Part shown: positions 3 through 42,450 of the stretch, in pieces
Numbering within the stretch: position 1 is the first letter of the stretch
How the letters are laid out: each line of letters starts with the position of its first letter
From: Takakia lepidozioides
Lineage: Eukaryota; Plantae; Bryophyta
Assembly (NCBI GenBank): GCA_030704615.1
Contig: CM060733.1
Span: 9,176,001-9,240,000, forward strand
Length of the DNA stretch: 64,000 nt
Direction of reading: 5' to 3'
Program-made: the position numbers and the translations under genes
The notes under the pieces: model-generated
What the model was told of the DNA's origin: nothing
Databases searched by the model: none
What the model saw: the letters and a program-made list of their open reading frames with translations, nothing else

Positions 3-1548
3 ATGATAGGAGGAAAATTGTACAAGCTGGGACCAGATGGAGTCCTAAAGACATGCTTGTACCATTATGAAATTAATAAAGTCTTGGAAGAAATTCATAA
101 GGGGATAGCTGGAGGACATTATGGAGAAGAGACTACCAGCAGGAAAATACTACTTGCAGGATACTGGTGGCCTACCTTATTCAAAGATGTACATAATTAT
201 TGTAAGAGCTGTGATGAGTGTCAAAGGCTAGGACCTTTGCAGAGATATGGAAAGATGGCACTGCATCCTACTTGTAATGCCTACTGAACCATTCCAGAAA
301 TGGGGAGTAGACTTTGTTGGGCCAATCAATCCACCAGCCAGGAACACCCAGAACAAGTATATAATCATAGCCACAGATTATACTACTAAGTGGGTAGAAG
401 CCAAGGCACTGCGAGATAACACAGCGAAATCTACAGCTAGATTTCTTTATGAGAACATAATCATGAGATTTGGCTGTCCCTTAGAATTTATCAGTGACCA
501 AGGGAGTCATTTTATCAATGAGACCATTGAATTGTTGACTAAGGAGTTCATGATTGTGCACAGGAAGAGCACAACCTATTACCCACAGGGCAATGGGCAA
601 GCAGAGGCCACCAACAAGATACTATGCACTATCCTTGCTAAGATAGTCAATGCCAACAGAACTGATTGGGATACAAAGCTGTTAATAGCTTTGTGGTCTT
701 ACAGGACTTCATACAAGGTCACTACCAAGTATACACCATTCCAATTAGTCTATGGCATTGAAGCTCTACTTCCAGTAGAATTCTTATTACCTACCATGAG
801 AACTGAATGGGGAAGGAGAATGGAATTGGAGGATTCAATTAAAGTAAGGAAACATGAACTATATCATGTGGAAGAAGTACGTGCTGATGCAGCAGATAAC
901 ATGGCCAGAATTCAGATGAAAAGAAAGGATCGGTTTGATGAAGACAAACTAAAAACTTTTAAGATAGGAGATTTGGTACTGTGGTTGCAGAAGAAGGGAA
1001 AGATTAAAGCTTCTAAGCTTAAATCACCATGGAAGGGACCTTATGTCATACCGAAGATGTATGATAACAACACAACTATGTTACAAACAATTAACAAAGA
1101 AATGCTTGGTAGAGTCAATGCCAACAAATTGAAGGGATACAGTGGTATCAATGATAGACCATTACAGCATGATTTGCATGTTGAACCACAGGCGCAGTCA
1201 AAGACTACACCAGTAGCACCAGCAGAGCATGAAGTACTTGTCATATCGCCAAATGTGTATGGCCATGGCAGAATACACAGAGGTTCGCACAGTGTCACAG
1301 CCCGTCACAGCCCATCACAGGCAACACAGCCCACACAGGTTGCACAGTCCATAGGAGCAGTGACAGGTGGACACGAGTTAACAACAGTAAAGTGGCCGGT
1401 AAGTAAAAAGACAGTTTGGGAGTTAAATTCAGAGAATGTGCCACGGGGTCAGAAGAAGACGGGAGAGTGTTTGAATTCAAACACATGGCATATAGAGCGC
1501 ATCACTCCGCATTGCTTGTATTGTGTTAGAGGACTGTCTGGGACTTAG
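3..1548 (+). mobile_element. Ty3/Gypsy integrase region, element 1 (5' part lies outside the window; one frameshift)
   Basis: ORFs 3-287 and 247-1548: HHCC zinc-binding region (IHKGIAGGH...CDEC), rve core WGVDFVGP...ISDQGSHF...GQAEATN, then WKGPY. Closely similar to the integrase at 7960-9200. Confidence 0.95.
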
Positions 1549-1631
1549 ACACTTATACGGGATCTGTAAGGTACCCTTAATTTTTGCACAGACTGAGACC
1601 AACAGGAGCCTTAGGGGTGATAGCAGCGCAC

Positions 1632-2458
1632 TGTAGAAGGGGGTTACACAGCCGGTCACAGTCGTCACAGCCGACACAGCCAGACACAGTCAGCACAGCT
1701 CGTCACAGCCGACACAGCCACACAGCCAGTCACAGCCCGACACAGCCAAACACAGTCGCACGGCCAGTCACAGCCCGACACAGCCATCACAGCCAACACA
1801 GCCCGTCACAGCCGACACAGCCACACAGCCAGTCACAGCCCGACACAGCCAAACACAGTCGCACAGCTTGTCACAGCCCGTCACAGTTTCACACAGCCAG
1901 TCACAGCTTGACACAGCTGTCACGATCATAGGGAACGGAGAGCAGGACAGGGAACGACTGTGGGGAACAACACCTGCAAATGGAACATGTTAGTTCACGG
2001 ACGACGGTTAGTAAGGGAAACGGTTAGAGCCACGGGTAGGAAGATAAAGGGAGAAGCAAGGACTGGGAGAGGGGGATTCTTGGAAGCACGTCAGGGGAAG
2101 GACTTCTAGGTGAGGGAAGAGAGGGGATCGGGCGGAGAGCAAGAACAGAAGCAAGCATGGAGAGCACGGTGAAGGAGGAGAGATGATTAGCAGATGCTTG
2201 TTATATGCAAAGCTGTAGTGATATTGTAAAGCAGATTAGAGACACAATGGCTTCGGCCTGATACCTGATAAATCATAATCTGATACTTATACGATACAAT
2301 CACATTGTGTAGAGAGATCTGAGTGAAGCTGTGGAATGAATGGATGAGTTGATGGAAACCGATAGATTGAGGAAGCAAACTGATACTTAATTATCAATGG
2401 TAAGGTAGCTAAGATGAATGCGGAAAGGGAAACAAATAGGAAACACCCCCATGATACA
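1632..2458 (+). repeat. Probable LTR (5' LTR of element 2, possibly shared with element 1)
   Basis: Starts TGTAGAAGGGGGT and ends ACCCCCATGATACA (TG...CA with an imperfect terminal inverted repeat). Lies between an integrase end and a gag-pol start. No second copy in the window. Confidence 0.6.
1646..1925 (+). repeat. CACAGCC/GTCACAG low-complexity tandem array
   Basis: Dozens of CACAGC(C) units with a higher-order duplication. The same motif occurs at 1290-1345 and 9310-9650. Confidence 0.9.
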
Positions 2459-2471
2459 CTAGCTGTAGGTC

Positions 2472-3167
2472 ATGACTGATTGTTCTGCGCGGGCTGAGTA
2501 CTTAGAGATTTCCAACTCTTCTATCTTGGAGTTTCCGCCTCGGATAGCGAAGGGATGGGTGAGTAAAAGCCGCGCGACATTTGGCGACCATACTGGGGAA
2601 CTGAGTCATGAACAACCAGATGTGACAGGCATCTGGTGGGATCATGGTGGTTGGACCATTAAAGAATTTGAAGTGAATCAAATTCCCTGTGGAACGAAGG
2701 AAGAAAGATTGTCCAAACAATTATTTCAAAGGTTCTTGGAATTGCCAGACGGTTGTAAAGAAAATATTCTTAAGCGAGTGCATGATGCTGATCCGGAATG
2801 GGGTCTGGAGAAAGGAGTGATAAAGATTTATCAGGTAGCCTGTAGAGGAAGAGCACGTTGGTTACCAACGTTGGTTTATGTGATAGCATTGCTATCCATT
2901 AAGCGAATAGAGTTTGAAGGCTGGGAAGAAAGAAAGGTGAATGTTTATACTCATATGCATGAAGAGCTTGTACTGGTAAAGAATTGGATTCCAAAGGATA
3001 TTTTGTGGATCAAACTCACACCAAGAACAGCTTTCCAGACTTGTTTGCCATATGGTTATATGGTAACGGAGACTTCAAGTATAGCCAAGGGTGCATTGAA
3101 GCTTGAAAGAAACCCAGGCATATACGAGAGATATTACAGAAGAGAGTTTTGGTTATTGCCACATTAA
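2472..3167 (+). CDS. Intact 231-aa extra ORF upstream of gag, unknown function
   Basis: Uninterrupted ORF starting 13 nt after the putative LTR end. No motif recognised. Confidence 0.5.
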   Translation: MTDCSARAEYLEISNSSILEFPPRIAKGWVSKSRATFGDHTGELSHEQPDVTGIWWDHGGWTIKEFEVNQIPCGTKEERLSKQLFQRFLELPDGCKENILKRVHDADPEWGLEKGVIKIYQVACRGRARWLPTLVYVIALLSIKRIEFEGWEERKVNVYTHMHEELVLVKNWIPKDILWIKLTPRTAFQTCLPYGYMVTETSSIAKGALKLERNPGIYERYYRREFWLLPH

Positions 3168-3188
3168 AAGAAATGAAAGACATGGGAC

Positions 3189-5640
3189 ATGAGTGATGAA
3201 AGAGAAGCTAGACGCCAGAGATATTCAGTAAAAAGAGAAAGCTATCTGAAAGCTAATTATCCATATCTTTGGGAGAGAAGAATAGACATAGGGGAATCAT
3301 CTGGACCTCTCACACCATTAAGATCAAAGAGTACATCACCCATACCGGAAGAACTAGAGTTGGATGCCACTCCTTCTGTTTCTTTGCAAGAAAGATTAAG
3401 GGAATTGGTACAGGAAGAAGATCAATCACGAGGTGAAAGATCTAAGGTACATCCCTGGATAAAAGATTTGACAGAAATCTTTGATAAGAGTTGGCATGGA
3501 ACACCAAAAGCAGGAACTCCAGTTTCTGAAGCGGAAGGTGAAGAAGGAGAAGAGGATGTGGCAGAGCCAACGGAGAGTTCAGACTCTCCAACACCATTAC
3601 AGTTGAGTTACATGAGTGAAGAAAAAACCCAAGGACAGAACTTGGAGGATGAAAACAGGGAGAAGAAATTGGAAGAGGAAGAATATGAAGAAGTAGACCC
3701 AACAGCTGAGGTTGAGACTACAACCAGGACATCCCAACCCGTTGGACCTGGATCAAGTGGAGCACTTGGATCATAGGCCAACGAAGGTGTCGGCTCAGGG
3801 GGATCAAGCGGGCTGCCTGGATCTGGCTCTGGGGGGACAGAGAGTATGGGAAGTAGTGCAACTGAAGCTGGGAATATTGTGAATATCGTGGGGCCGGAAG
3901 CAGGGAGTGCTCAAGGGCCACCACTTGGTGGAAGATCCACCACAAAAACAACAGGTCCAGAAGGACCAGCACCAGCAAAGGTGCCAGCAACTGTCAGTGG
4001 GCAGAAGGTAGGGCCACAGATGGCGTTACAACCAACACGGGCAAAACCACCCTTTCCAATATATTCAGGAAAAGGGGATCCCGATGTACACATTAGCCAA
4101 TTTGAGCACATGTGTATAGTGAACAATGAGAATGGCGATGATGCCAAGATGAGATTATTTTCTTGTTCACTTATAAAGAAAGCAAGTGAATGGTATGCAA
4201 GATTCCCTGATAATCATTTCCTAACCTGGAATGGCTTGAATACAACATTCCGAAATAGGTTCAGGACAAGTAAAACTGAGGATGAAGTGTATGGAAGTTT
4301 ACAACAGTTAAAGCAAAAGAAGCATGAAACTGTTGAGGAGTATATGGAAAAGATGGAATTGATGATGAAAAAGCTGGCTGCAGTACCAGCACCCGGTTTA
4401 CAGAAGACTTGGTTTGTGAGTGGACTAAGACCAGAGTTGCAAAAGAAAGTGGATATGTTACCTCATAATACAGTGGAGGAGGCATTTGAAACTGCAAACA
4501 GAATTGAGCAATTGGAATGCTCAGGAGAGAGAAAAAGGATGATGAAGACTCTGAGGATGAGTCAGATGAAGAAGAAGAGCAGGAACTAAAAAGAAAGAGT
4601 AAGAGAAAGGAGAAGCTGAAGAGGGATAACTATGAAAAAAAATTGAAATAAATCTTGAAGAAGTATGCCACAGAGGCTGCAACACATTGGAGGAAGGGTG
4701 TTTGGTGTGCAAAGTGCCAGAATGAAGGCCACACCACTACTGAATGCCACATGAAAGAAAAACATTGTACTATCTGTAAAATGGATAACCATTCTACTGA
4801 GAATTGTTACTACAACAGAAGGACAGCTGCAAGAGAACCTAGGCAAGTAGGGTGCATCAGGTGCAGCCCCAGCCAAGAAGAAACAATGATCAGGACCACT
4901 ATGGTAGGTCTGGTGGTTATAACAATGGCATGGAAGGGAGAGGTAATTCAAGAGGAAATTACCAAGGAAATTCCAGAGGCAACTATCAGGGTAATCCAAG
5001 GGGGAATTACCAGCCCGGGAATCAGGATTACAGAAATAATCCAAGAACAGACCAAGGGAGAGGACCCAATGGTGAAGAACTATGTTACTATTGTAATCAG
5101 CCAGGACATCGCAGGGCAGCCTGTTCATTCTGGATAAGACACCAGAATGAGATGAGAGCTCCTGTGAATGAGGGCCCAGTGGTGGCAGCTCACATGGTTA
5201 GGCCATGTGTTGTACCAGAAGTAAGTACAATGATAGTAACAAGAAGTAAAGCCAAACTAATACCTCCAGTAGTAGAGGAAGAGATGATAATGAAGGTGGC
5301 AGTGATATGCCTGAAGATGATGAGGCTTGGAGAGATGAGAAGGAACTGCACAAGGAAGTGGCAGATACCATAAGGGAAATGCAGAAGAGTACTGATATTC
5401 CTGTGGCAGATTCCTCTGATTCTGATGGAGAAGAAGAAGGGAGTGAGGATGAAAGGAAGAAAGAAGATGCAGACATGCAAAGTAATGAAGAGACTTTGGC
5501 TGAAGTAATATGCCAGACCAAAGCAGAATTACCATTGGACAGCTATTGGCTGTGGCACCTTATTGGTAGGCACAGGCTGTATCAAGCAATCAATCGAATT
5601 GCCCAGGAGACAGGAAACACAGACCTGACAGCAAGGTGAC
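3189..5640 (+). pseudogene. Gypsy gag of element 2 (frameshifted)
   Basis: Retrotransposon capsid motifs (YSGKGDPDVHISQF, ASEWY, QKKHETVEEY, FVSGLRPEL) and zinc knuckles CAKCQNEGHTTTEC, CTICKMDNHSTENC and CYYCNQPGHRRAAC. Confidence 0.9.
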
Positions 5641-5689
5641 CAGTTATAATGTGAAGCCGGAAGGGCGAGAAACAGTCATGGACTTTGAT

Positions 5690-8600
5690 GATTCTATGCC
5701 AGTAATCCAATTGAGAATTGGAAGCACAGAACTAACTGATGTACTGATAGATGGAGGTTCTGGAGTAAATATCATGACACCAATTAAGAAAGAAGCTTGG
5801 TCTAAGTAACATGAAACCAGCCCCATTTACAGTACAATGGCAGATCAAAGAAGTGTACAGCCATTGGGATTAATAAGAGGAGTTAAGATACAGATACAAA
5901 GATGATCTTTATGATCACAGTAACTGTGTTGAAGATGGATGAAGTCATGGAGGCTTACTCCTTATTATTGGGACCCGTGGCTGAAACAGGCCAGGGTATT
6001 CCATGACTGGAATTCTCAGTTACTAACCGTGCATAATGGGATACACGAGATACAAATTACCACAAAGAAATCTAGTAGATTACCTGCTACAAGAAGACCT
6101 CGAGGAGTCAGAGAGTATGACTGGAAGGAGGACTGGATGAGGAGCAGGAAGCTACCCTATTTGCTGCACACCCAGAGTGGGAGCAGGTTGCAGAGATGCG
6201 GCTGGAAAGCCTAAGTTGTTTAAGAGGTATCTGCTGTGGTGTAGTGACAACAACACCAACTGAAGAGGAAACCAGCATTTACCCATCACATTTCTATGAA
6301 GAAAGAGAAGGAGAAATGGAAATCCTAGAGGAACCAGCCACTGTGAGCTTACAGGATGAAGTGGTGACTGGTTGGACAATCACAGCTGATGAGCAGGTGA
6401 GGGAAGTGAATGTGGGAACTAAAGAGGAACCGAGGATGGTGAAAGTAGGAGCTGATTTGGAGCCGGAATTCTTTGAAGAAGCTAAAAGCTTGTTCATCAA
6501 ATACAGAGATGTATTTGCTTGGAGCTATGAGGATCTAAAAAGGAATACCACCTGAAGTCTGTCAGCATAAGATTGAACTGGAACCAGGGCAGTACCAATC
6601 AAGCAGGCGAGGTACAGAATGAATCCCAACTACGCACAGAAGGTTGGAGAAGAGATTAAGAAGTTGGCTGAGGCTAAGTTTATATACCCAATAGAGTATA
6701 CAACTTGGTTGTCACCCATTGTGATAGTTCCCAAGAAGAATGGTAAACTAAGAGTTTGTGTGAACTACAAGAAGCTGAATGCTTGTACGAAGAAAGATCC
6801 TTTCCCTTTGCCATTCACAGAAGCAGTATTAGACACTGTGGCAGGCCATGAGATGTACTCATTCATGGATGGCTTCAGTGGTTATAATCAAGTGCAAGTG
6901 GCAGAAGAAGACCAAGGAAAAACAGCTTTCATCACAGACTGGGGGGCTTATGCATACAAAGTCATGCCCTTTGGACTTTGTAATGCACCAGCGACCTTTC
7001 AGAGAGTGATAAGTGAATCTTTTCATGAGTATCTGGATGATTCATTCATGCATGTTTCTTGGATGATTTCAGTGTGTACAGCTCTAAGAATGAGCACTTA
7101 CATAAATTGGAGTTTGTCTGGCCAGATGCAGGATGAGAGGTCTGGGCCTGAATCCAGAGAAGTGTACTTTCTGTGTGAACTCAGGGGTGCTTCTGGGACA
7201 CATTGTGTGTAAGAAGGGACTTCTTGTGGATCCCAGGAAGACAGAGTCCATTAAAGCCTCTCCACCACCAGTGAATGTTAAGAGTTTAAGGAGATTCCTT
7301 GGGCAAACCAGTTATTACAGAAGATTTGTCAAAGGTATGCACAATAGCAGCACCATTGAGCAAGCTACTGAAGAAAGATGCAGTGTTTGCCTGGACAGCT
7401 GAATGTCAACAGGCGTTTGAGGAACTTACACTGTCAGTAACAACTACACCTGTGCTGATTAACCTCACTGGCATGTAGTATTTCACGTTCACTGCGATGC
7501 ATCAGGAGAAGCGTTGGGCGGTGTTAGCCCAGAATGTTACAGGAAATAAGATTCACCTGTGTACTATGCTAGCAGGTTGATGAACAGTGCTGAAAGGAAC
7601 TATAGCACAACGGAAAGAGAAGCATTGGCAATGATCTATGCAGTGAAGAAATTCAGGCATTACCTGTTGGGCAAAGAAGTTTATGTTCTATGTGGATCAC
7701 CAGGCTCTGATATACCTGGTAAACAAACCTCTGATAAGCGGAAGAATAGCAAGATGGTTGATAATCTTGCACGAGTTTGAGTTCGAGGTTGTTTACAAGC
7801 CTGGGAGACTGCATCTTGTGGCGGATCACTTGTCACGGTTATCAACAGGAGAACCAGCCACAGAATAGATGATCATTACCAGATGCGAGTCTATTTGCAG
7901 TGGAGGTGCAGGGAGTGCAGATGACTGGTTAGATTGGCAGTGGCCAATCAGATACTACCTTGCTCATGGTCAGTGCCCACCTAGTTATGGTAAGGAGCAG
8001 AGGAAGAGAATCGCTATCAAAGCTTATACCTTATACTATGGTAGGAAGCAGAATGTATAAGCTAGGACGTGATGGAGTACTAAAACGATGCTTGTACCAC
8101 CATGAAGTAAATAAAGTTTTGGAGGAAGTTCATAAAGGAGTGGCTGGAGGTCATTTTGGAGAAGAGACTACCAGTAGGAAGATACTACTCGCAGGTTACT
8201 GGTGGCCTACTTTTGTTCAAAGATGTACACAGAGTATTGTCAGAGTTGTGATGAATGTCAGAGGCTAGGACCTTTGCAGAGATCTGGAAGGATGGCCTTG
8301 CATCCTACAATGCCTACGGAACCATTTCAGAAATGGGGACTAGACTTTGTTGGACCAATTAACCCACCACCAGCCAAGAATACACGGAACATGTACATAA
8401 TTACAACAGCCACTGATTATACTACGAAGTGGGTGGAAGCTAAAGCTTTGAGGGACAACACAGCCAAGTCCACAGCAAGGTTCCTGTATGAGAACATACT
8501 TACACGATTTGGCTGTCCCTTAGAATTTATCAGTGATCAGGGAAGTCACTTCATGAATGAGACCATTGAATTGTTGACTAAAGAGTTCATGATTGTGCAT

Positions 8601-32074: not shown

Positions 32075-33758
32075 CTACCAGTTTGAGGGAAACATGCGCT
32101 AGGAATATCACTTAACCAAATTGTGGTCACAACTGGTAGGCCAACAATTTCTTACTGCTGATTGTGCATGTAGTGCATTATCTTGTGTTTTGGGTTGAGC
32201 TCTTTGTTCCAAGAACTGAAGCAAGTTACGCAGTTCTTTTGCGTGAAAGCCCTACAGCTGTTCCTCATTGGCAAACTTGTCTTGACAATTTATGAGGGCA
32301 GATTGGACTGAACGATCACCACCTGTCCGTATATTATATGCCTCAAGGGGCCTATTGTGGTACCCCATTGGCAACTTTAGTTTGTGCAAATCTAGAGGTA
32401 TGACCCAACAACAACTTTAAGACTGCTGTTACTTCAACATCACTGGTGTGTTGAGCATCCCAACTAGCTGTGGTTTTGCAATATGGAGGGAGAAGACTCG
32501 AAATTTGAGTTTCTCCTTGTACTTTAGATAAAGTGTGTTGGTTCTATTTTGTAAAACGGGGTAAGGTAAAGTGGGAAGCATCCAACCTATGTTTGTCTGT
32601 CTTGCGATCCTGTAGCTTAAACCAATCAGGTGACTGAAATGACCAATAGCTTGACATTATGGTGTCACACTAGTGAGGATGTGGCTTTATGAGTTATACT
32701 CGCTGTGAGATGGGGCAATGTTTCTAAATGTGGTTTGGTGCCAAATGTGTCTTGAGGGGTGCTCTACAACTTTGATGGATCAGTGGGCATACTTTGTCGT
32801 TAACTTGGCATTTCTCACCCAGATTTTATAGATCCGATTCTCAATTGATCTTGGTAAGTTGAAAAGAAGGGACGTGGAGCTGTTTCTTCCTTAAGGCTAA
32901 CAAGTGTATGCAAGGATGATTGTTCAAATCCACATGTGATCTATGCTACTATAAGTTGACCCCTGGTTTCCTCGTATCTGGCAATATATGTTTGGGTCCT
33001 GATATTGTACAATGTGGTGTGATATATATGGAACAGTTGTGCAACGTTTGTTGCTCTAAACCTTGCTGAAGTTTTTCTGCTTAAAGTAATACAGAAATTG
33101 CCAATCGACTAGAAGGCTCTCTAGATGAGACTAGAAACGGTCGGAACGAGGTTGGAGTAACTACCTCCTGGAGGGTGTGCCAGAGCATTAGTTATTTCAG
33201 AGGTTTGCAGAAAGTGGTGGGTATTGTGGTGGTGAAGAGCAATGAACAATAAACACAAGGTTTGGTGTTCAAATCGTACTGTAGCAGTAATGTGTGTTAT
33301 TAAATATATATTTTGTCGAGGGGGTTGCCAATCAGCTCGAAGGTTGGAGTTAGTCCGCTCGTAGGTCTGCCGGGGGGTGTGCTTAGTCTGCTCGTCGGTC
33401 TGCTGGAGGAGGGTTTGCCCAGTCCGCTAGAAGGTCCGCCGGGGTAGATGAACAAGGACTTAGAAAAATTTCAGAATCTGGCCGATCCGGTGAATGGGTG
33501 GAGGTCTGCCCAGTCTGTGTGTGCCATGTGCCATTGAGCACATATTGTATTAAGTATACACGTATTTACATTTATGACCATGTGTACCAAAAGACATATG
33601 AAGGGCTAATATTCCAGAAAAATCCCAATTTGCTATTTTTCATAAATGTCTAGTGACAAAAATACTTGAAATTCAAATATCTTCCACATCGTAGGTCCAA
33701 AAATTATGAGATTGCCTCGATGCACCCCTACTCATCGAGGGATTTCCAGTGGTATTAA

Positions 33759-34549
33759 CCCTTAAGTTCCCAAGCGACCTGAATCAGGTCACTTTGAATT
33801 TGCAGTTTGACCTCATTTTTGCAGATCTGATCTGATGGGGCCCACTCCTGAAGCTTTAATGACAAGGGATTTGTCTCGAGTATGATGCAAAAAAACAAAA
33901 TTTAAAAAAAAACAAAAGCTACAACCTACAAAAAATATCTTAAATCTCTGATTTACGTTTTGGGGCCTGAAAAGGGCTTGTTGACCGCCGACGTGGCAGG
34001 TTAGCAAGCCCAAAACAGATTGCACTCCAAAGGCCATTTTTGGCAGAAAAGTAGCAATTTCGGAAAAAGCGCTTCACCTTGTGGTGTGTGAGCATTACAT
34101 ACACACATCCACCGTTGGCTTTTAAAAAATTTGTAGAAAAAAAGTACTTCATTTGGAGGCACATTTTCTCTTGTCAATTTTGAGATTTCAACCCCCATGT
34201 AATTGCATGCATAGCAACCATAGGTGAAAAAATCAGATGGACCTGCAATTTAGTGGGGTCATAGCCACTCCACTATTGATTTGGAGGATAAAGCTAGGTT
34301 TTGATTTGGTCAAACCAATTTCTTTCTCACTTTTTCTTTGGGACCTGATATTTGAGGTCCGGGCCAATAATCTCACAATTTCCACGGTGTATTTGGCTCA
34401 TTTTTTGGTATGTCATGCATAAATCAGCTGGGCCCATTGCTATAAGGCTGGAATCTCCGACTATTTTTGGTAGGTTTCTAGGGGCAATTTACTGCAGCTG
34501 GGTACCCAAAATTGGTAAAAAGTCATAAAAGGGATTGGGAACTTAAGGG
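33759..34549. mobile_element. 791-bp MITE with TTAA target-site duplication (piggyBac-like ends)
   Basis: TTAA|CCCTTAAGTTCCCAA ... TTGGGAACTTAAGGG|TTAA with perfect 15-bp TIRs. The paralogous empty site GTATCAAGACCCC is at about 35176. Confidence 0.9.
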
Positions 34550-34819
34550 TTAAGACCCCGGGAAAAACAAAACAAAACAAAACAAATTATGTTGCTTAAT
34601 ATATAGACTAGTCTAGTCTATGTTGTTAAGCACATATTATAAGTATTTATGTATTTCAGCTATAAAAGATGTCTTAAGCAATATTGTAAATGCCAACATT
34701 CCAGAAGAACCCAATTTGCATGAATTTCTAGTAACAAAAAATACTTGAAAATCAATATCTCCCACACCACATGTCCAGAATTATAAAACCGCATTGACTA
34801 CTGTGGCATGTGACGTTGA

Positions 34820-34986
34820 GCACAGACATGTAGCCCAGTGGTACTGGGCACATACCACGTTGGATGTGGTTGTGGGTTCAAACCACGGTCTGGTGTGTCA
34901 TGAAGGTGTCCACCTTTCAGCTGGAAGGCAGTAGCCCTTATGGTGAAGAGACACCATAAGTTACGCTCCCTTCGGGAGGCATCATA
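34820..34986 (+). mobile_element. tRNA-derived SINE with a LINE-related 3' tail
   Basis: A box TAGCCCAGTGG (34831), B box GGTTCAAACC (34875). The 3' end TTACGCTCCCTTCGGGAGGCATCATA matches the LINE 3' end at 21 of 26 positions. Confidence 0.7.
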
Positions 34987-35678
34987 CTTTGTGACCATGT
35001 GTACCAAAACACAAATGAAGGGCCAATATTCCAAAAATAAACTAATTTACAATTTATTCATGAATTTCTAGTGACAGAAAATACTTGAAATTCAATATCT
35101 CCCACACTGCAGGTCCAAAAAAATGACCTATGAAATCGCCTCGATGCACCCCTACTCGTCGAGGGCTTTCCAGCTGTATCAAGACCCCTAGCGGTTGGGG
35201 AGATCTCAACAACGCTACAAACAAAACAAAACAAAACAAAACAAAACAAACTACCTTACTTAACCCGTAAAAAATGACATGATCACATCAGATTTTTGCC
35301 ACGATCCAGCTTTCATGGATGGTAGTGGATGGAAATGAATCCTGAAGATAAATTGTACATGTTAGGGAGGAGAACATGTGGGAATTTACACAATACAAGC
35401 TCTGCTCTCCAGAATTTTCCAAAGTGCAAGGGGCTGGAAATCTAGTGCAGCACCATTGACGTGCCTATGTGTCAGACCAAATGGGCAATCTTGTAAATAA
35501 CATCTAGTGCTGAAAAACTTATCTTAATGCCAAAAAATTTGGACAATGCGCTATGCTATGTTCTGCCATGCACTTACTTACTAGAGGAATTAGAAAACAA
35601 ATACCACCTCATGGGTGTACTTGGGAAAGAAGCCAAAACATGACAATGGTGGACCCTTGGCACTCCACTGGCAACCCC

Positions 35679-37734
35679 ATATATATATATGACGCCAACC
35701 GAAGTCAGCGTAAATAAGAGCCTCTTCCCCTTGCAGGTACTGCCCCCTTTCGGGGGTGGGCTCTATCTATGTAGCTCGGCTTACTGCGTGTCCAATTGGC
35801 CGCTTTTGATCTTACGTTTGTCTAGGATGAGAGCAGTGAGAGATCGGATGGCTGTATAGTGGAGGGTACGTAGTAGGGTGGTTGTCGCTGTATGAGGTAG
35901 GTTCAGGTGTTGGTGCAGGACAAAAATGTTGTGGCTATGGGCTCCTCCTCTTACACCCGCAGTAATAATTGTAAGTGGGGTGGTGTGTCAGCCGTGTTGG
36001 CGGAGGGCCAAAATGAGTGGTTCGTATTTTTCGCGTTTGCGGTGGATTGCTTGATCTGGGTAACGGTCATGACAGAACGTGAACTCAATTAAGTGGATAG
36101 TAATGGAGGGGCGCGGGCCTATTGGTGGTGCTGATGAGATATGGAGCCCTTGTGCAAGTAGTATGTCAGGACGTAGTCTAGATGGGCAGTGGCATGGGTA
36201 GGCATTGCATGAGCATGGCAGGAGCCAATGGGGGACCGTGTTGTCAGGTGGTCTTCCCTGGTATGTGCCTGCATTAATTAGGTTGAACCATCTAGAGTTA
36301 GGGTGTGATAGCAGCAGTTTTTGGAGGTGCCACACTCCTTGGTTGTGTTTAGTTATGTGGAGTCCATGTAGTATAGATTGTTTGCAGTGAAGTAGACGAT
36401 GTGGCCACGTGTCGACCCGAGGTGGTTGGTTGTAGCACATCGTGTAATGTTTATTAGGGTAGAGTACTGGTCAGAACAAGTTGCGTCTTTGATTGCCCAT
36501 ATATTGTCCATAGCGGAATCGGAGTGTTTGCTTGATTTGGGCGTCAGTAATTGTAGCAGATGTCCAATATTGGTTGGATATGCTATGCAAGAGGTGTGGG
36601 GAGGCGACCCAATTGGAGATATACAAGTTTGTGTAGGTGCGGGATGCTTGAATTTGTTCTTTGGTTTCGCCCACGATAAATGTATGTAGGTCTCTGATGG
36701 GTGCATTGTCCAGTTGTGTGCTTTTAGTGGAGGATAGCCAAAAAGGATAGGTATGCGCTATGTGGATCGGGTTGTTTGAGGTTTGGGAAGTAGGTTGGGT
36801 AGCGCCGAGTTGGGCCAGTTGGTCCGCCAGTTCATTTCCTTTGATATTTGTGTGGGAGCGGACCTTGTGTAGGTGTATGTGTAATTTGGATGAAGATATG
36901 ATATCAATGATTGCTTTGATGAGCTGGAGGTCTGGGTGGTGTATTTGTGATGAGGGTTTGAGGTTTTGGTTGATGAGTAGGTAGAGGGAGACCAGACTAT
37001 CCGTGAAGATGTAGTAGGTATCTTGGCTTTGGTGTGGGAGGGGGAATAAGGCGTCATGTATAGACATGAGTTCTGCACGTAAGATGTTTTGTCTTCCAGG
37101 AAGGCGTTTGTATATTTGTGTATTATTGGCAACATTGTATATTCTGTATCCCGCATGTCCGTCCTTGAGGGAGCCGTCTGTGTATATACATTGCAGTGGG
37201 TTAAATTTTAAAAGCGAATGAGTGTTATTTTTTCTGGGGGCGGTGGTACATGTAAAAGGTTTGATGTTGTCCAAGGTGGTTGCGGGGGTGTCGCTTGCCA
37301 TCGCTTGTCTGGGTTGATCCTAGGATATCGGGGGAGGGAGAGTAAGGGTGTGTGTACTGTGGCAGTTGGGCCGAATAAGCGTTTTAGTATGATGCTCAGG
37401 TTCGAGAGGAAGATATTGGATATTTGTGGGTCTTTGTTATGGTGGACACATTCTAGCTTAGTTAAGGAGGGTTCTGGGTAGGACACATATTTTGGCATGG
37501 TTGGGGGGTTGTCATAGATCAATGTTTGCGGGTCGAATGTGACCATTGTGAATATTCTTGCAGGGTTTGTCAAGATGGGATGGTCGCTATTGGTCAGATT
37601 GTTGTGTGGGATTAATAAAACAGTAAATGCATTTATGGATGCATGTGCAGCTATGCGGGCCTAGTGTAATGCTTCGCCAGCTGTGGAGATGTTAAGGGGG
37701 TGAGTGAATCCACGTCCTTACCATTGGTAGGATC
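35679..37734 (-). mobile_element. Non-LTR retrotransposon 3' portion: RNase H, zinc finger, restriction-like endonuclease, 3' UTR and (AT)n tail
   Basis: RNase H IYTDGS...RAEL...FTDS...HKVRSHTNIKGNELAD (37301-36471), then DTWPHRLLHC...KHNQ and RLE RPDILL...IEFTFC...KREKYEPL. Structured 3' end at 35691 followed by the AT tail. Confidence 0.85.
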
Positions 37735-38348
37735 TGTCACGGACATAGCCCAGAGGAACTTACCAGGAGTAAATACCAGAAGTTACACAGTTACCATGTT
37801 ATCAAAAGTTATCGTGATTTACTGTGATTTATCACGATCTACCATGATTTACCATAAATTACCATTAGTTATCAAGTTACCGAGAGTTTACCAAATTACC
37901 GAGAGTAACTTGAGAAATTGCTTAGGAAGCTTCATTTGGAAGAAACTTCTCTATAAATATACCTCTTTTGTTTAAGGAAACTTCTCCATCAAGAAACCTC
38001 CATTGGGGAAGCTTCTTAGGGAACTTCCTAGTAGCCAGTACATATAGGAGGTGAGACTGGACACTCTTCAGTCTCGCCAACACCAATTCAAGCTACTCTT
38101 GTTTCCAGTTCCAGTACTCCAGCCCAGTTCCCAGTGTTCTAGTCCAGTTTCCAGTATCTGGTACTCCAGTCCAGTTCCAACATTTCAGTCGAGTTCCAAT
38201 ATCTTGTACTCTTGTCCATTGTTATAAAGATCATCTTGATTCTTGTTTACTCATCATGCATTCGGCCACACCGACCTTGATTTTTTGTCTAGTCTTGTAT
38301 CTTTAGTCTGATCTTTTGTTTGTGTCAGTCATGTTCTCGTTATTGACA
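37735..38348 (+). repeat. 5' LTR of the Tf1/Tcn1-like element
   Basis: Positions 37884-38348 match 61721-62223. TG...CA ends and a TATA-like motif at about 38039. Confidence 0.92.
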
Positions 38349-38350
38349 GT

Positions 38351-38361
38351 TTGGCGAGACT
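38351..38361 (+). promoter_or_regulatory. Self-priming primer-binding site
   Basis: TTGGCGAGACT is the exact reverse complement of AGTCTCGCCAA at 38070-38080 in the LTR, about 30 nt downstream of the TATA. Confidence 0.85.
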
Positions 38362-38386
38362 AAAGTTTGTTCCTTACTTAGTTAAG

Positions 38387-40401
38387 ATGGAATGCACATT
38401 TGCGGAAATGGTCGTCATCTTGCAAAGTCTCCAACTCCAGATGCAAGAACTTCGTACCTCTACTGCCCAACTACAAGTTGATCAATCTCAAGATCTTAGT
38501 AACACTCTCAACAATTTGAAAAACAAATTTCAGAGTTGAAAAAATCGAACAATGGATCTTCAACCTTACGAGCCCCTACTGCAGCAACTCCTACTGCAAC
38601 GGTTCCTCCAAATCTTCAACAGATTACAAGGGAACCAAATGTCAGCATGCCCGAGAAATCTGATGGGACGAGATCAAGATTTCGCGGTTTTGTTCAACAA
38701 GTACGATTGTTCCTACGACTACATCCACAACGCTACCCTGATGAAGGTATTCAAGTGGGATTCGTGGGCGTCATTCTATCAGGCACTGCCCTATCTTGGT
38801 TTGCACCGCTATTAGAGAAAAAATCGCATTTACTATACAATTTTGAAGCATTTATGTCCGAGTTCGTTGCAACGTTTGGAGATAATGATAGAGAGAGAGT
38901 TGCAGAGACAAAGATGCGAAATCTTCGACAATGAGCACGTCCTGCTTCCGTTTATGCTGCCAAATTTTGACAACTTGCGTGCGACCTCGACTGGAATGAT
39001 AAGAGCCTCATTAGTCAGTTTTGATGTGGACTAAAAGATGATGTAAAATATTTGTTGCTGACAATGTCAAATGTGAGTACAATGAGCGAATTCATCACCC
39101 ATATCATTGCATGCGATAATCGTTTGTTCGAAAGACGTCAAGAGAAGCGATCTGGATGGTCGACGACGTACCATGCCGCTGCTACTACGGTACCAAACAC
39201 AACGATCCATTAGACATCCGGTAGTGATCTTATGGAGATTGATGCTGTCTGATTCAAACCATTGACACCACAAGAAAAACAAAGACGACGCTCGAATGGA
39301 TTATGCCTCTATTGCGGAGAAGAAGATCACATAGCATTAAACTGCTCCAACAAGAGAAGATTCAAAGCTCGGGACACAACTCAAGTGTTCGATACGAGGA
39401 GGTCGGAAAACGAAGATGTCCAGTCACAGTAGGGACCATGCGGCTGGACAACACAAATTCCTCACCAAAAAAATGTATCTTTCTACCTCCAGACCCTGCA
39501 CTTTGCTTCACATTTCCGGTAAAAAACAGAGTGCAAAATTGAGATATATCTCTGTAGAAGCACTTTTGGACTCAGGGGCTTCAGCATATTTTATTCACAA
39601 AAACTTTATGAAACAACACAATTTAACGCTCGTAAGAAAGAAATTATCGGCCCTGTTGAAGTCATCGATGGACGACCGTTAGCATCAGGAAACATTGACC
39701 ATGAAACTTGACCCCTTGAAGTGAAACTTAAAAATCAAGCATCACATATTGTTTTCAACGTCATCCTGTTTCCAACGAATCATGTGATCTTTAGACTTCC
39801 CTGGTTTGTACTTCATAATCTTGACATTGACTGGCGATCACGAAAAATTTCGGTAAGACAAAAATGCAAAAGTACCAAAGGTATTCAACCCCTATTTCTT
39901 GGAGCTAGAGCCTTCATGAGAGTTACGAAGAAAGACGCGACATTTGCACTTTATGCGACTCCGATCAAGAGCACAACAGACCAAGGTACTTCGACATTAC
40001 CCACTCAATATCAAGATTTCAAGGATGTCTTCGAGAAGAAAAATGTAGACATGTTGCTAGAACATCGACCTTATGACTATGCAATTGAGTTGCAAGAAGG
40101 AGCCCAACCACCATTCGGCCCAATCTACAATTTATCTCAGACGGAGTTAGCTGCTTTACGCGAATACATTGATGAAAATTTGTCGAAGAATTTCATTCGA
40201 CATTCGAAATCATCTGCGGGAGCACCTATCTTATTTGTGAAGAAAAAAGACGGATCGTTACGCATGTGTGTGGACTATCGTGGGCTCAACAAAGTCACTA
40301 TAAAAAATCGTTACCCACTACCGCTGATTTCCGGACTCCTCGAACAACTTGGATGAGCAAAAATTTTCACAAATATCAACTTGATAGGAGCTTACAACCT
40401 T
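38387..40401 (+). pseudogene. gag-protease-partial RT of the Tf1/Tcn1-like element
   Basis: Gag PEKSDGTRSRFRGF...LSGTALSWF, knuckle CLYCGEEDHIALNC, protease [33 protein letters not shown]. Breaks off at GAYNL. Several in-frame TGA stops. Confidence 0.92.
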
Positions 40402-40799: not shown

Positions 40800-42450
40800 G
40801 GAATGAATCATATTTTGGATGTGACAAGGGCAGTAAAATATTAGAATAGCATGAAACATTCGGAAGAGGTACTAGGGTAGTACAATAAGGTTTGGGTTTA
40901 CAGTAAGGGTAAGGGTTTAGGGTTTGAATTTAGGGTACAAAAAGACAAACAAATATGATGGACTCACACTCGGTAGAATTAAGAAATGGTTGAGGAATTT
41001 GATATCCCTGTAATCATTCTATCATACCTTATCCAACAAAAGAAAATATTAAAAGAGCATGAAACATTGAGAAGATGTAACATGATAGTACAATAAGGTT
41101 TTGAGTGTAACTAGGGTAGTACACTAAAGTTATTGGTTTATGGTAAGATTAATGGTTTAGGGGTGATGGTAATGATAGGGTTTTTGGTTTGGGTTTAAGA
41201 ACACTATTGGACAAACAAATATGGAAGACTCACAGTCGCTAGAACTTGGTGTGTGTTAGAAAGATAATAAAATAAAATAAAAAATGGAGAAACAATTATT
41301 ATGGAAGAGTCATTGGGCCGGAGAAGTATTTAGATTGAGGATTCGTCCTTGGAACCTGGTATTAAGATACATATGGTTATGGTATGGATACTTCATTTCC
41401 ATTTGCAAGGGAAAGGTAAGGGTTTAGACGTAACAATGGCGTAGGGTTTTGTTTAGGATTCCCGACGAGGGTTTAGGGTTTGGGTTGAAGGCAAAAATGG
41501 TGAGCATACATGCCGGAAGACTCGCACTCGCTACAACTTAGTGTTGTTAGTAAGGTAGTACTAAGCAAAATAAAAATGAAGAACCTAATATTATGGAAGT
41601 GTAATCATTGCATTGGACAAGTATTTAAATGAAAGACTCGTCCTTGGAACCTGATATTAAGATACATAGAAAGCAAAGTTCGATAAAAAAAGGGTAAGTG
41701 GATGTCAATCCAAACCAAAGGCAAAACCTTGCGCAAGGTGAAGGGCGAAGAGATTTGAATAACCATAAATAGTTATGGTTATGGTATGGATTCATTCCCA
41801 GTTGCAGGGGAAGGGTAAGGGTATAGACGTAAAAATGGCGTGGGGTTTTCCTTAGGGTTTTCAACGAGGGTTTAGGGCTTGGGTTGAAGGCAGAAATGAT
41901 GAGCATACATGCCGGAAGACTCACACTCGCTACAACTTAGTGTGTATTAGTATGGTAAAAAATAAAAATTTGGTTACATTGAAGAGATTTGGATAACCAA
42001 AATGGTTATAATTATAGTATGGATAGTTGATTCCCATTTGCAAAGGGAAGAGAAAGGGTTATGGGGTATTGGGTTAAGGGTAAATGTTTAGGGTTTTCTA
42101 GTAAGGGTTTAGGGTAAGGGTTTAGGGTTTTTGTTTAAGTTACAAAATAGACAAACACTAAGTCTTATGGAAAACTCTAGACTTCGCTAGAACTTAGTGT
42201 TGCTAGTAGGGTACTAGTAAGCAAAAAAAAAAATGAAGAACCTAATATTATGGACAAGTATTTAAATGAAAGACTCGTCGTTGGAACCTGGACCTAGTAT
42301 TAAGATGTAACATAGAAAGCAAACTGTAACATGCCTAAATGCATGTCAATCCAAAACAAAGAAAAAAACTAGCGCAAATGTGAAGGGAGAAGACATTTCA
42401 ATAACCATAATGGTTATGGTTATGGCTATGGTTATGGTATGAATAGATTT
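40800..42450 (+). repeat. Subterminal degenerate tandem repeats rich in telomere-like TTTAGGG
   Basis: GACTCACACTCGCTACAACTTAG-like anchor at about 40961, 41227, 41519, 41918 and 42180, with many GGGTTTAGGGTTT tracts. Confidence 0.8.

Follow-up and report, generated by a model that had tools for sequence, protein, structure and literature searches.

Results

Elements at the locus

We describe here a short interspersed element (SINE) and a long interspersed element (LINE) with related 3' ends, which lie 700 bp apart on opposite strands in a stretch of 64,000 nt from the Takakia lepidozioides genome (contig CM060733.1, positions 9,176,001 to 9,240,000). This whole stretch is termed the window, and all coordinates are counted from its first letter. 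Repeats abound in this plant DNA, in which open reading frames (ORFs) of Ty3-type gag and integrase, a C2H2/IDD-like ORF and a CTD-phosphatase-like ORF are found, and the closeness of the SINE and LINE copies is a coincidence of such a repeat-rich region. The SINE copy (34824-34990, plus strand) is non-coding, has a length of about 165-175 nt and consists of three parts, namely a tRNA-like head, a short linker and a 3' module of about 84 nt. The LINE copy (35679-37660, minus strand) has a reading frame that runs from 37319 to 35784 and is interrupted by two stops. Its 3' module of 79 nt (35766-35688) starts 14 nt past the stop codon and ends at a (TA)n repeat. The parts of both elements are listed here with the evidence for each; R1 and R3 are covariance models and L-numbers denote foreign LINE loci, both described below.

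34824..34892, plus strand: degenerate tRNA-like head of the SINE (sequence; Rfam tRNA model aligned over the full length)
34903..34986, plus strand: 3' module of the SINE (R1 match; pair counts; RNAalifold)
34987..34990, plus strand: end of the SINE copy, C + TTT (loose ends behind 34990 with a T-run consensus in two runs, X1 and X2)
35679..35687, minus strand: (TA)n microsatellite tail of the LINE (sequence)
35688..35766, minus strand: 3' module of the LINE (top R3 match in the window; nearest-neighbour energy)
35767..35783, minus strand: stop codon TAA of the LINE (35783-35781) and 14-nt spacer to the module (translation, sequence)
35784..36470, minus strand: C-terminal CCHC and PD..E..K restriction-like-endonuclease-like domain of the LINE (motif alignment; one internal stop)
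36474..37319, minus strand: RNase H domain of the LINE (Pfam PF00075, E 7e-14; stop before the next piece, frame unchanged)
37211..37660, minus strand: remnant of a PCIF1_WW-like region (tblastn to L006 787-1158, inside a PF12237-bearing ORF)

Homology of the SINE and LINE tails

A first-pass annotation of this DNA had proposed that the SINE and the neighbouring LINE have their 3' end in common. The sequence strings that it quoted for both ends are indeed present where it had placed them, and several comparisons bear the proposal out. The pattern CAGTA..GAAGA..CTTCGG matches the window twice, in the SINE and LINE tails only, with 0.02 matches expected. A Smith-Waterman comparison of the two tails gives a score of 33, which is reached by none of 5000 dinucleotide shuffles (14.5+/-2.1, maximum 28). 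With only the LINE tail as input, we built a covariance model (R1) and ran it with filters off on both strands of the window. It aligned end to end with the SINE tail (43.8 bits, E 1.4e-7), and its second-best match reached 12 bits. In 63 kb of unrelated control loci R1 found nothing above 11 bits. Together, these sequence comparisons support homology of the SINE 3' module to the 3' end of the adjacent LINE.

Predicted fold of the shared module

The helices (P1 to P4) and the strands that connect them were assigned as follows.

34905-10/34950-55, plus strand: SINE P1, GGUGUC with GACACC
34911-12, 34929-33 and 34945-49, plus strand: SINE junction strands CA, CAGUA and GAAGA
34913-18/34923-28, plus strand: SINE P2, loop AGCU
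34934-36/34942-44, plus strand: SINE P3
34956-64, plus strand: SINE linker
34965-70/34975-80, plus strand: SINE P4, loop UUCG, one C x A mismatch
34981-86, plus strand: SINE 3' strand AUCAUA
35764-59/35722-17, minus strand: LINE P1
35758-57, 35742-38 and 35727-23, minus strand: LINE junction strands CA, CAGUA and GAAGA
35756-52/35747-43, minus strand: LINE P2, loop GAAA
35737-35/35730-28, minus strand: LINE P3, loop GCAA
35716-10, minus strand: LINE linker UAUUUAC
35709-04/35699-94, minus strand: LINE P4, loop UUCG
35693-88, minus strand: LINE 3' strand GUCAUA

Both modules have one architecture: P1, CA, P2 with a tetraloop, CAGUA, P3, GAAGA, the 3' strand of P1, a linker ending in UUAC, P4 with its UUCG loop, (A/G)UCAUA and the tail. 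The shared module is predicted to form a three-way junction of P1, P2 and P3 that is followed by the terminal UUCG hairpin P4. This departs from the three hairpins of the first-pass annotation, in which helix P1 had been missed and GAAGAG was taken for a loop, although it belongs to a junction strand. Its observation of conserved linkers and loops between stems that differ yet still largely pair holds. Between SINE and LINE every helix differs, yet none of the three junction strands does. In a model-based alignment of the two tails with 20 pairs, 97% of the cells pair and 7/20 pairs are compensatory (P1 3/6, P2 2, P3 1, P4 1), compared to 40-60% paired cells and 0-2 compensatory pairs in slid controls, for which the 3' partners were shifted by 1-3 columns. 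RNAalifold on the SINE and LINE tails gives the same junction fold. For the LINE, nearest-neighbour energies are -27.5 kcal/mol for the junction fold versus -20.6 kcal/mol for the three-hairpin fold. The middle one of the three hairpins is weak in the LINE, where the minimum-energy fold joins the six leading nucleotides of the module to a later GGCUCU. A search of Rfam, ribozymes included, gave no relevant match at E <=5 over 33000-38500 or at E <=10 over 34805-34995.

The SINE as a high-copy family

Copy number was judged from Logan contigs of four public runs, three labelled with the species of the window and one a plant metagenome, which were placed on 34700-35800 at a likeness of at least 80%. 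Summed contig depth is 100,000-530,000 over 34811-34995, versus about 400-3,000 in the flanks, and single-copy contigs have a depth of about 40. Other SINE copies break off in loose ends at 34827/34829 and at 34990, and contigs in three runs cover 34827-34990 at about 85% identity; thus, head and tail are linked in other copies. Both the multi-copy nature of the SINE and the linkage of its head and tail had been expected beforehand. Depth over the B-box region is roughly double that over the module, and this excess may come from a head common to other families or from contig collapse. A scan of metagenomes with a strict DNA pattern of the P4 region gave no match.

The A box of the head, TAGCCCAGTGG (34831-34841), is a perfect match to the consensus TRGCNNAGTGG. 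A B-box-like sequence, GGTTCAAACC, is found at about 34866-34876, which places it 35 nt from the A box, start to start; the spacing in tRNAs is longer. The D arm (GCCC/GGGC) is intact. The Rfam tRNA model gives a full-length, cloverleaf-like alignment at 12 bits (E 8.6) against a gathering score of 29, and ARAGORN did not call a tRNA in the head. The head is tRNA-like and degenerate; a tRNA origin, which had been assumed before, may be indicated by the A box, the B-box-like site and the D arm, but is not called by the two tRNA detection tools. Overall, the data support a multi-copy, SINE-like family with a tRNA-like head for RNA polymerase III (pol III).

The alignment of other copies begins at 34827/34829 and is preceded by about nine conserved nucleotides further upstream (consensus ..GACAACCAG). 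Because of these extra nucleotides the copy in the window looks slightly 5'-truncated. Its 3' end reads ...AUCAUAC + TTT, and other copies continue after position 34990 with a T-run of about 12-19 nt. Judged by its sequence and place, this T-run would resemble a pol III terminator-like tail. The copy sits within a host repeat, in which about 26 nt are replaced relative to two paralogous host units. The host repeat family ends in (CAAAA)n and has three units nearby (33571-33758 + 34550-34590; 34600-34800; 34988-35250). Contig depth puts its abundance, very roughly, at a few hundred copy-equivalents at most. Being without coding capacity and without obvious pol III boxes, it is possibly another non-autonomous retroposon.

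The neighbouring LINE

Five motifs of the LINE C-terminus are kept in four homologues: C..C..DTW.H.LL.C, RHN, (R/K)PDIL, IEFT and K..KY. They suggest a CCHC finger followed by a PD-(D/E)xK-like nuclease motif, as in a restriction-like endonuclease (RLE). This RLE-like piece had no match in Pfam, and a sequence search of the PDB returned no R2 match. Weak lectin matches in the same search were taken as spurious. An AlphaFold model of an intact RNase H + RLE homologue reached a mean predicted local distance difference test (pLDDT) of 44.5 and was unusable for the RLE fold. No reverse transcriptase (RT) and no apurinic/apyrimidinic endonuclease (APE) is found within the window; hence, the LINE copy is 5'-truncated near the PCIF1_WW-like remnant. 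No target-site duplication was detected around the LINE fragment. The DNA that hosts the LINE tail insertion (35290-35650) is moderately repeated, with a contig depth of about 1,000-6,000.

The length of the (TA)n repeat varies among other copies, which show ATATAT insertions and TA-rich loose ends at 35679. In contigs, the depth of the tail unit 35680-35766 (87 nt) exceeds that of the adjoining upstream LINE sequence about 200-fold, and many other copies of the unit break off exactly at 35766. This excess may be due to head-less copies or to many LINE families that have only the tail in common. In the loose ends at 35766, other copies have ..CCTAA and then a T-run (about 15 nt) upstream of the 87-nt unit. 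A commoner LINE family with such a stop codon and T-rich spacer could account for this, as could solo tail copies that prefer such a target.

The module in LINE homologues of other organisms

A protein word search for LINE relatives, in a collection that lacks the LINEs of the window's own genome, gave best matches of about 35-45% identity, and ten contigs encoding such relatives were taken from ENA and JGI metagenome assemblies. A metagenome scan with the RLE piece as protein query gave no match. One relative, L002, carries in one orientation the order Exo_endo_phos (E 6e-10), RVT_1, PCIF1_WW, RNase H and a C-terminus with CCHC and PD..E..K. RNase H lies upstream of the C-terminal domain in the window LINE, L002, L006 and L008. 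These domain comparisons support the assignment of the window LINE to a clade with the Dualen/RandI domain set, APE-RT-(PCIF1-like)-RNase H-CCHC/RLE, in agreement with the Dualen-like affiliation that had been proposed. Between RT and RNase H, this clade has a PCIF1_WW-like domain, related to cap-adenosine methyltransferases, which LINEs do not usually carry. It is found at 37211-37660 (minus strand) of the window and in L002:7548-9878, L006:427-1872 and L008:936-1814.

Regular-expression and R1 searches of the first six foreign LINE loci found no module. On aligning the downstream regions it was seen that the foreign LINEs end 110-950 nt past the stop and that their P3 has an arm of about 50 nt, which accounts for the initial misses. 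We present evidence here that the module is conserved at the 3' end of this LINE clade in other organisms. The same architecture is present at the 3' end of six foreign homologues (L001-L004, L008, L009), in the order P1, P2 with a 4-nt loop, (N)AGUA, P3, GAA(N), the 3' strand of P1, (U)AUUYAC and P4. A microsatellite of the type (TTTC)n, (TTC)n or (CTAT)n comes after each. (C)AGUA directly 5' of P3 and GAA directly 3' of it are found in 8/8 modules, and in the SINE and LINE of the window the C and G that flank AGUA/GAA are able to pair. From this sequence pattern we suggest that AGUA and GAA may adopt a loop-E/sarcin-ricin-like arrangement around P3.

A descriptor written from four modules had 11 matches in 254 kb, of which the best six are exactly the six modules recognised up to then. 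Applied unchanged to four new loci, it gave one match at the expected place in both loci that reach past the ORF (L008, L009), and none in the two that end short of the 3' end; the opposite strands were free of matches. The covariance model R3, for which only L003, L008 and L009 were used, finds the tails of L001 (48.7 bits, E 1e-9), L002 (42.1 bits, E 4e-8) and L004 (27.2 bits, E 1e-4) above a noise of 8 bits. Its top match in the window is the LINE tail at 35685-35769 (27.3 bits, E 1.3e-4). In seven LINE tails 91.8% of the cells pair, versus 75.7% in shuffles, and 25/35 pairs are compensatory; 0/500 shuffles reach either value. The alignment of the seven tails is fitted to the model, which inflates the pairing somewhat. 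Slid controls of the seven tails reach 29-54% paired cells, and these controls together with the out-of-sample matches argue that the covariation signal is real. The shared part had been described in advance as a covarying RNA structure, and the covariance-model searches and pair counts agree with this. An alignment of the six foreign tails with MAFFT, followed by RNAalifold, returned the helices P1, P4 and inner P3 but set P2 out of register, and was replaced by the model-based alignment. By sequence, the chain of homology leads from the foreign LINE tails to the tail of the window LINE and from there to that of the SINE, and the module is the LINE clade's own 3' untranslated region (UTR), kept in the lineage.

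The long 3' UTRs of three of the foreign LINEs contain, at the same position in each, a conserved block of about 230 nt (L001:14860-15100, L002:11640-11860, L003:1650-1860). The reverse complement of this block resembles a tRNA-derived SINE with the B box GGTTCGAWTC; the block may go back to an ancient insertion that was captured, or may have a function within the UTR.

Other features of the window

A non-autonomous element of piggyBac type (782 bp, 33768-34549) is flanked by TTAA at either end and bounded by 15-bp terminal inverted repeats, which are perfect and begin CCCTTAAG. The insertion lies within one copy of a local repeat, of which a paralogous copy near 35170-35180 represents the empty site. 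The window also has a satellite-like array (40900-42150), whose units measure about 290-660 bp and in which plant telomere-type TTTAGGG repeats are embedded.

Discussion

Homology of the two tails, covarying structure, the 3'-terminal position of the module and a high copy number are direct observations on this locus and its relatives. We consider it probable that the window SINE represents an abundant family with a tRNA-like head, whose 3' module is homologous to the 3' end of a Dualen/RandI-type LINE and forms a three-way-junction handle. In such a system, target-primed reverse transcription would begin with the binding of the LINE protein to the handle on its own RNA. Pol III would transcribe the SINE from its A and B boxes and stop at the T-run just behind the handle, and the resulting SINE RNA, presenting the same handle, could be copied in trans by the LINE enzyme. 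Protein binding, trans-mobilisation and pol III transcription of the SINE are inferred by analogy with established LINE/SINE pairs of the stringent type.

Several points weigh against this interpretation. It draws on the comparison of sequences and structures, from which the mobilisation step is reasoned. The structures were derived from the compared sequences, and the alignments were fitted to them. For the SINE copy in the window a 9-bp hairpin has a better energy than the junction (-25.7 vs -22.9 kcal/mol); in a SINE subfamily, seen in loose ends of three runs, P3 reads GCCC-UUCG-GGGU, by which the 9-bp hairpin is broken and P3 becomes a perfect tetraloop hairpin. The model of foreign tails, R3, reaches only 10.9 bits (E ~1) on the SINE tail, so the tie of the SINE to the wider clade runs through the window LINE. 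SINE and LINE tails are only about 72% identical, and microsatellite tails common to both, which the first-pass annotation had proposed to look for, are not what we find: the LINE ends in (TA)n and the SINE, in other copies, in a T-run. On these two grounds the neighbouring LINE family need not be the true partner of the SINE. A clean target-site duplication is not present around the SINE copy in the window; a candidate 6-bp duplication was rejected, as the comparison of paralogous units accounts for it by the host repeat's own sequence. Finally, the RLE assignment of the LINE is drawn from motifs.

The findings in foreign LINEs allow a wider reading, to which we lean only slightly. An RNA element of about 80-130 nt would define the 3' end of the whole plant-type Dualen/RandI-like LINE clade and serve as its specific RT handle, made up of a three-way junction with loop-E-like AGUA/GAA, a YAC linker and a terminal hairpin. 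SINEs and the apparently head-less 87-nt copies would amplify while carrying just this handle. If this is true, the handle is a defined minimal substrate to study template choice of dual-endonuclease LINEs.

Other explanations for the resemblance of the two tails have to be considered. UUCG and GNRA loops are common and an in-window blastn of SINE versus LINE tail is marginal (60 nt, 72%, E ~0.1), which would fit a chance likeness or a convergence of GC-rich hairpins with common tetraloops. Such a coincidence is extremely improbable in view of a Smith-Waterman score beyond all shuffles, the R1 match without any second one, and three identical junction strands that come in the same order in two modules, both 3'-terminal. 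Scarcely more can be said for a longer SINE that takes in the downstream repeat up to (CAAAA)n at about 35250, so that the module is central and no tail. It is true that what follows 34990 is repetitive, too, and ends in a microsatellite, but depth falls 30- to 100-fold at 34995, other copies diverge into T-runs at 34990 and the (CAAAA)n repeat occurs twice nearby without the SINE. We give this version next to no credence.

The depth of the 87-nt tail unit, about 200-fold above the LINE sequence 10-30 nt upstream, and the many copies that break off exactly at 35766 could also mean that the unit is an independent, headless, high-copy retroposon. In that event the SINE tail would come from it, or the reverse, and the copy at 35680-35766 would have landed beside a dead LINE. 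However, the unit lies 14 nt after the LINE stop on the same strand, and its own flanks are not duplicated. Moreover, the six foreign LINE homologues have the same 3' architecture, and the model made from foreign tails finds the window copy. Since foreign LINE tails carry the module, solo copies are better read as derivatives of LINE tails. The ..CCTAA and T-run upstream consensus could equally be the stop codon and spacer of other LINE families, and we regard an independent retroposon as quite improbable. A module with another role, for instance in stability or processing of the RNA 3' end, self-cleavage or nuclear export, together with a SINE that arose as a LINE-tail chimera, is in our opinion unlikely, too. 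It would be compatible with conservation and position, which alone are shown, and the 5' end of the solo units is fixed at the base of P1, as might be expected of an RNA-processing site. Against it stand the lack of an Rfam family match, ribozymes included, at the permissive thresholds given above, junction strands (CA/CAGUA/GAAGA) that do not fit a hammerhead core, and the very high copy of elements that keep the module, which argues that the module is what brings about their copying. Furthermore, tail sharing is an established signature of stringent recognition (PMC3747384). A handle common to SINE and LINE is the reading that we prefer.

Tail sharing between SINEs and LINEs is the main evidence for how LINE enzymes choose their RNA template. 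To our knowledge, the handles described until now have been simple stem-loops, which belong to L2-, CR1-, RTE- and some L1-type elements. The present case would extend this evidence to a land plant and to the dual-endonuclease LINEs, which have been little studied and are assigned a place in LINE evolution between the RLE and APE lineages. The module is a compact RNA that covaries and is predicted to fold into a three-way junction, and its invariant junction nucleotides are obvious targets for mutational, binding and structural work. In genome annotation, the assignment to a SINE family accounts for a very abundant repeat. A further RLE-bearing LINE, R2, has a protein that binds a structured 3' UTR and, as may be the case here, head-less, internally deleted short derivatives that keep the 3' end. 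R2 differs in being site-specific for 28S rDNA, in having no APE or RNase H and in the fold of its 3' UTR, and we know of no pol III-headed SINE partner of R2. Cognat et al. 2008 and Ohshima 2012 are the sources cited in PMC3747384 for the SINEX/RandI pairs of Chlamydomonas, which come closest to the pair described here.

Stringent-type LINEs need a specific sequence at the 3' end of their RNA template (PMC3747384), and Dualen is defined by the presence of both APE and a C-terminal RLE (PMC4640811). In Chlamydomonas reinhardtii, SINEX-5_CR and SINEX-6_CR, with a tRNA head, pair with RandI-5, and SINEX-1/2/4_CR pair with RandI-2/DualenCr3 (PMC3747384, Table 1). The partners listed for land-plant SINEs are RTE and L1 only (PMC3747384). 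Compared by description only, the present SINE is like these SINEX families in that its 3' end matches a LINE that is probably of the RandI/Dualen group and in that the tails are simple repeats and not poly(A). In contrast to the pairs of the green alga, it belongs to a land-plant genome, and for the SINEX pairs no three-way-junction or loop-E fold is mentioned in PMC3747384. The repeats differ as well: (TA)n, a T-run, (TTTC)n and (CTAT)n here, (ATT)n and (CTTT)n in SINEX (PMC3747384), and (ATT)n and (CTATTT)n in RandI LINEs (PMC3472496). Full-text literature searches (Dualen + SINE; RandI in mosses) found nothing closer than the Chlamydomonas pairs; Repbase, Dfam and SINEBase were outside their scope. 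Thus, the pairing of SINEs with RandI/Dualen LINEs is already known from Chlamydomonas, and its occurrence in the land-plant lineage and the junction fold are what we did not find described.

The T-tailed plant SINEs Au, p-SINE1-3 and ZmSINE1 are listed without a known LINE tail (PMC3747384, Table 2). With them the family has a tRNA-like head and a short 3' T-run in common, a likeness by description only. Unlike them, it carries a LINE-derived tail directly before the T-run. A closer parallel in RNA structure is offered by UnaL2/UnaSINE1 of eel and by ZmSINE2/3 with LINE1-1_ZM (PMC3747384), where, as here, a conserved and covarying 3' structure is common to LINE and SINE and is followed by short repeats. 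In pairs of the UnaL2/UnaSINE1 type, too, the stems vary and the nucleotides of loop and flanks are fixed. These handles are single stem-loops of L2 or L1 partners, whereas the handle described here is predicted to be a three-way junction with AGUA/GAA and a second hairpin, and its LINE probably belongs to the dual-endonuclease group.

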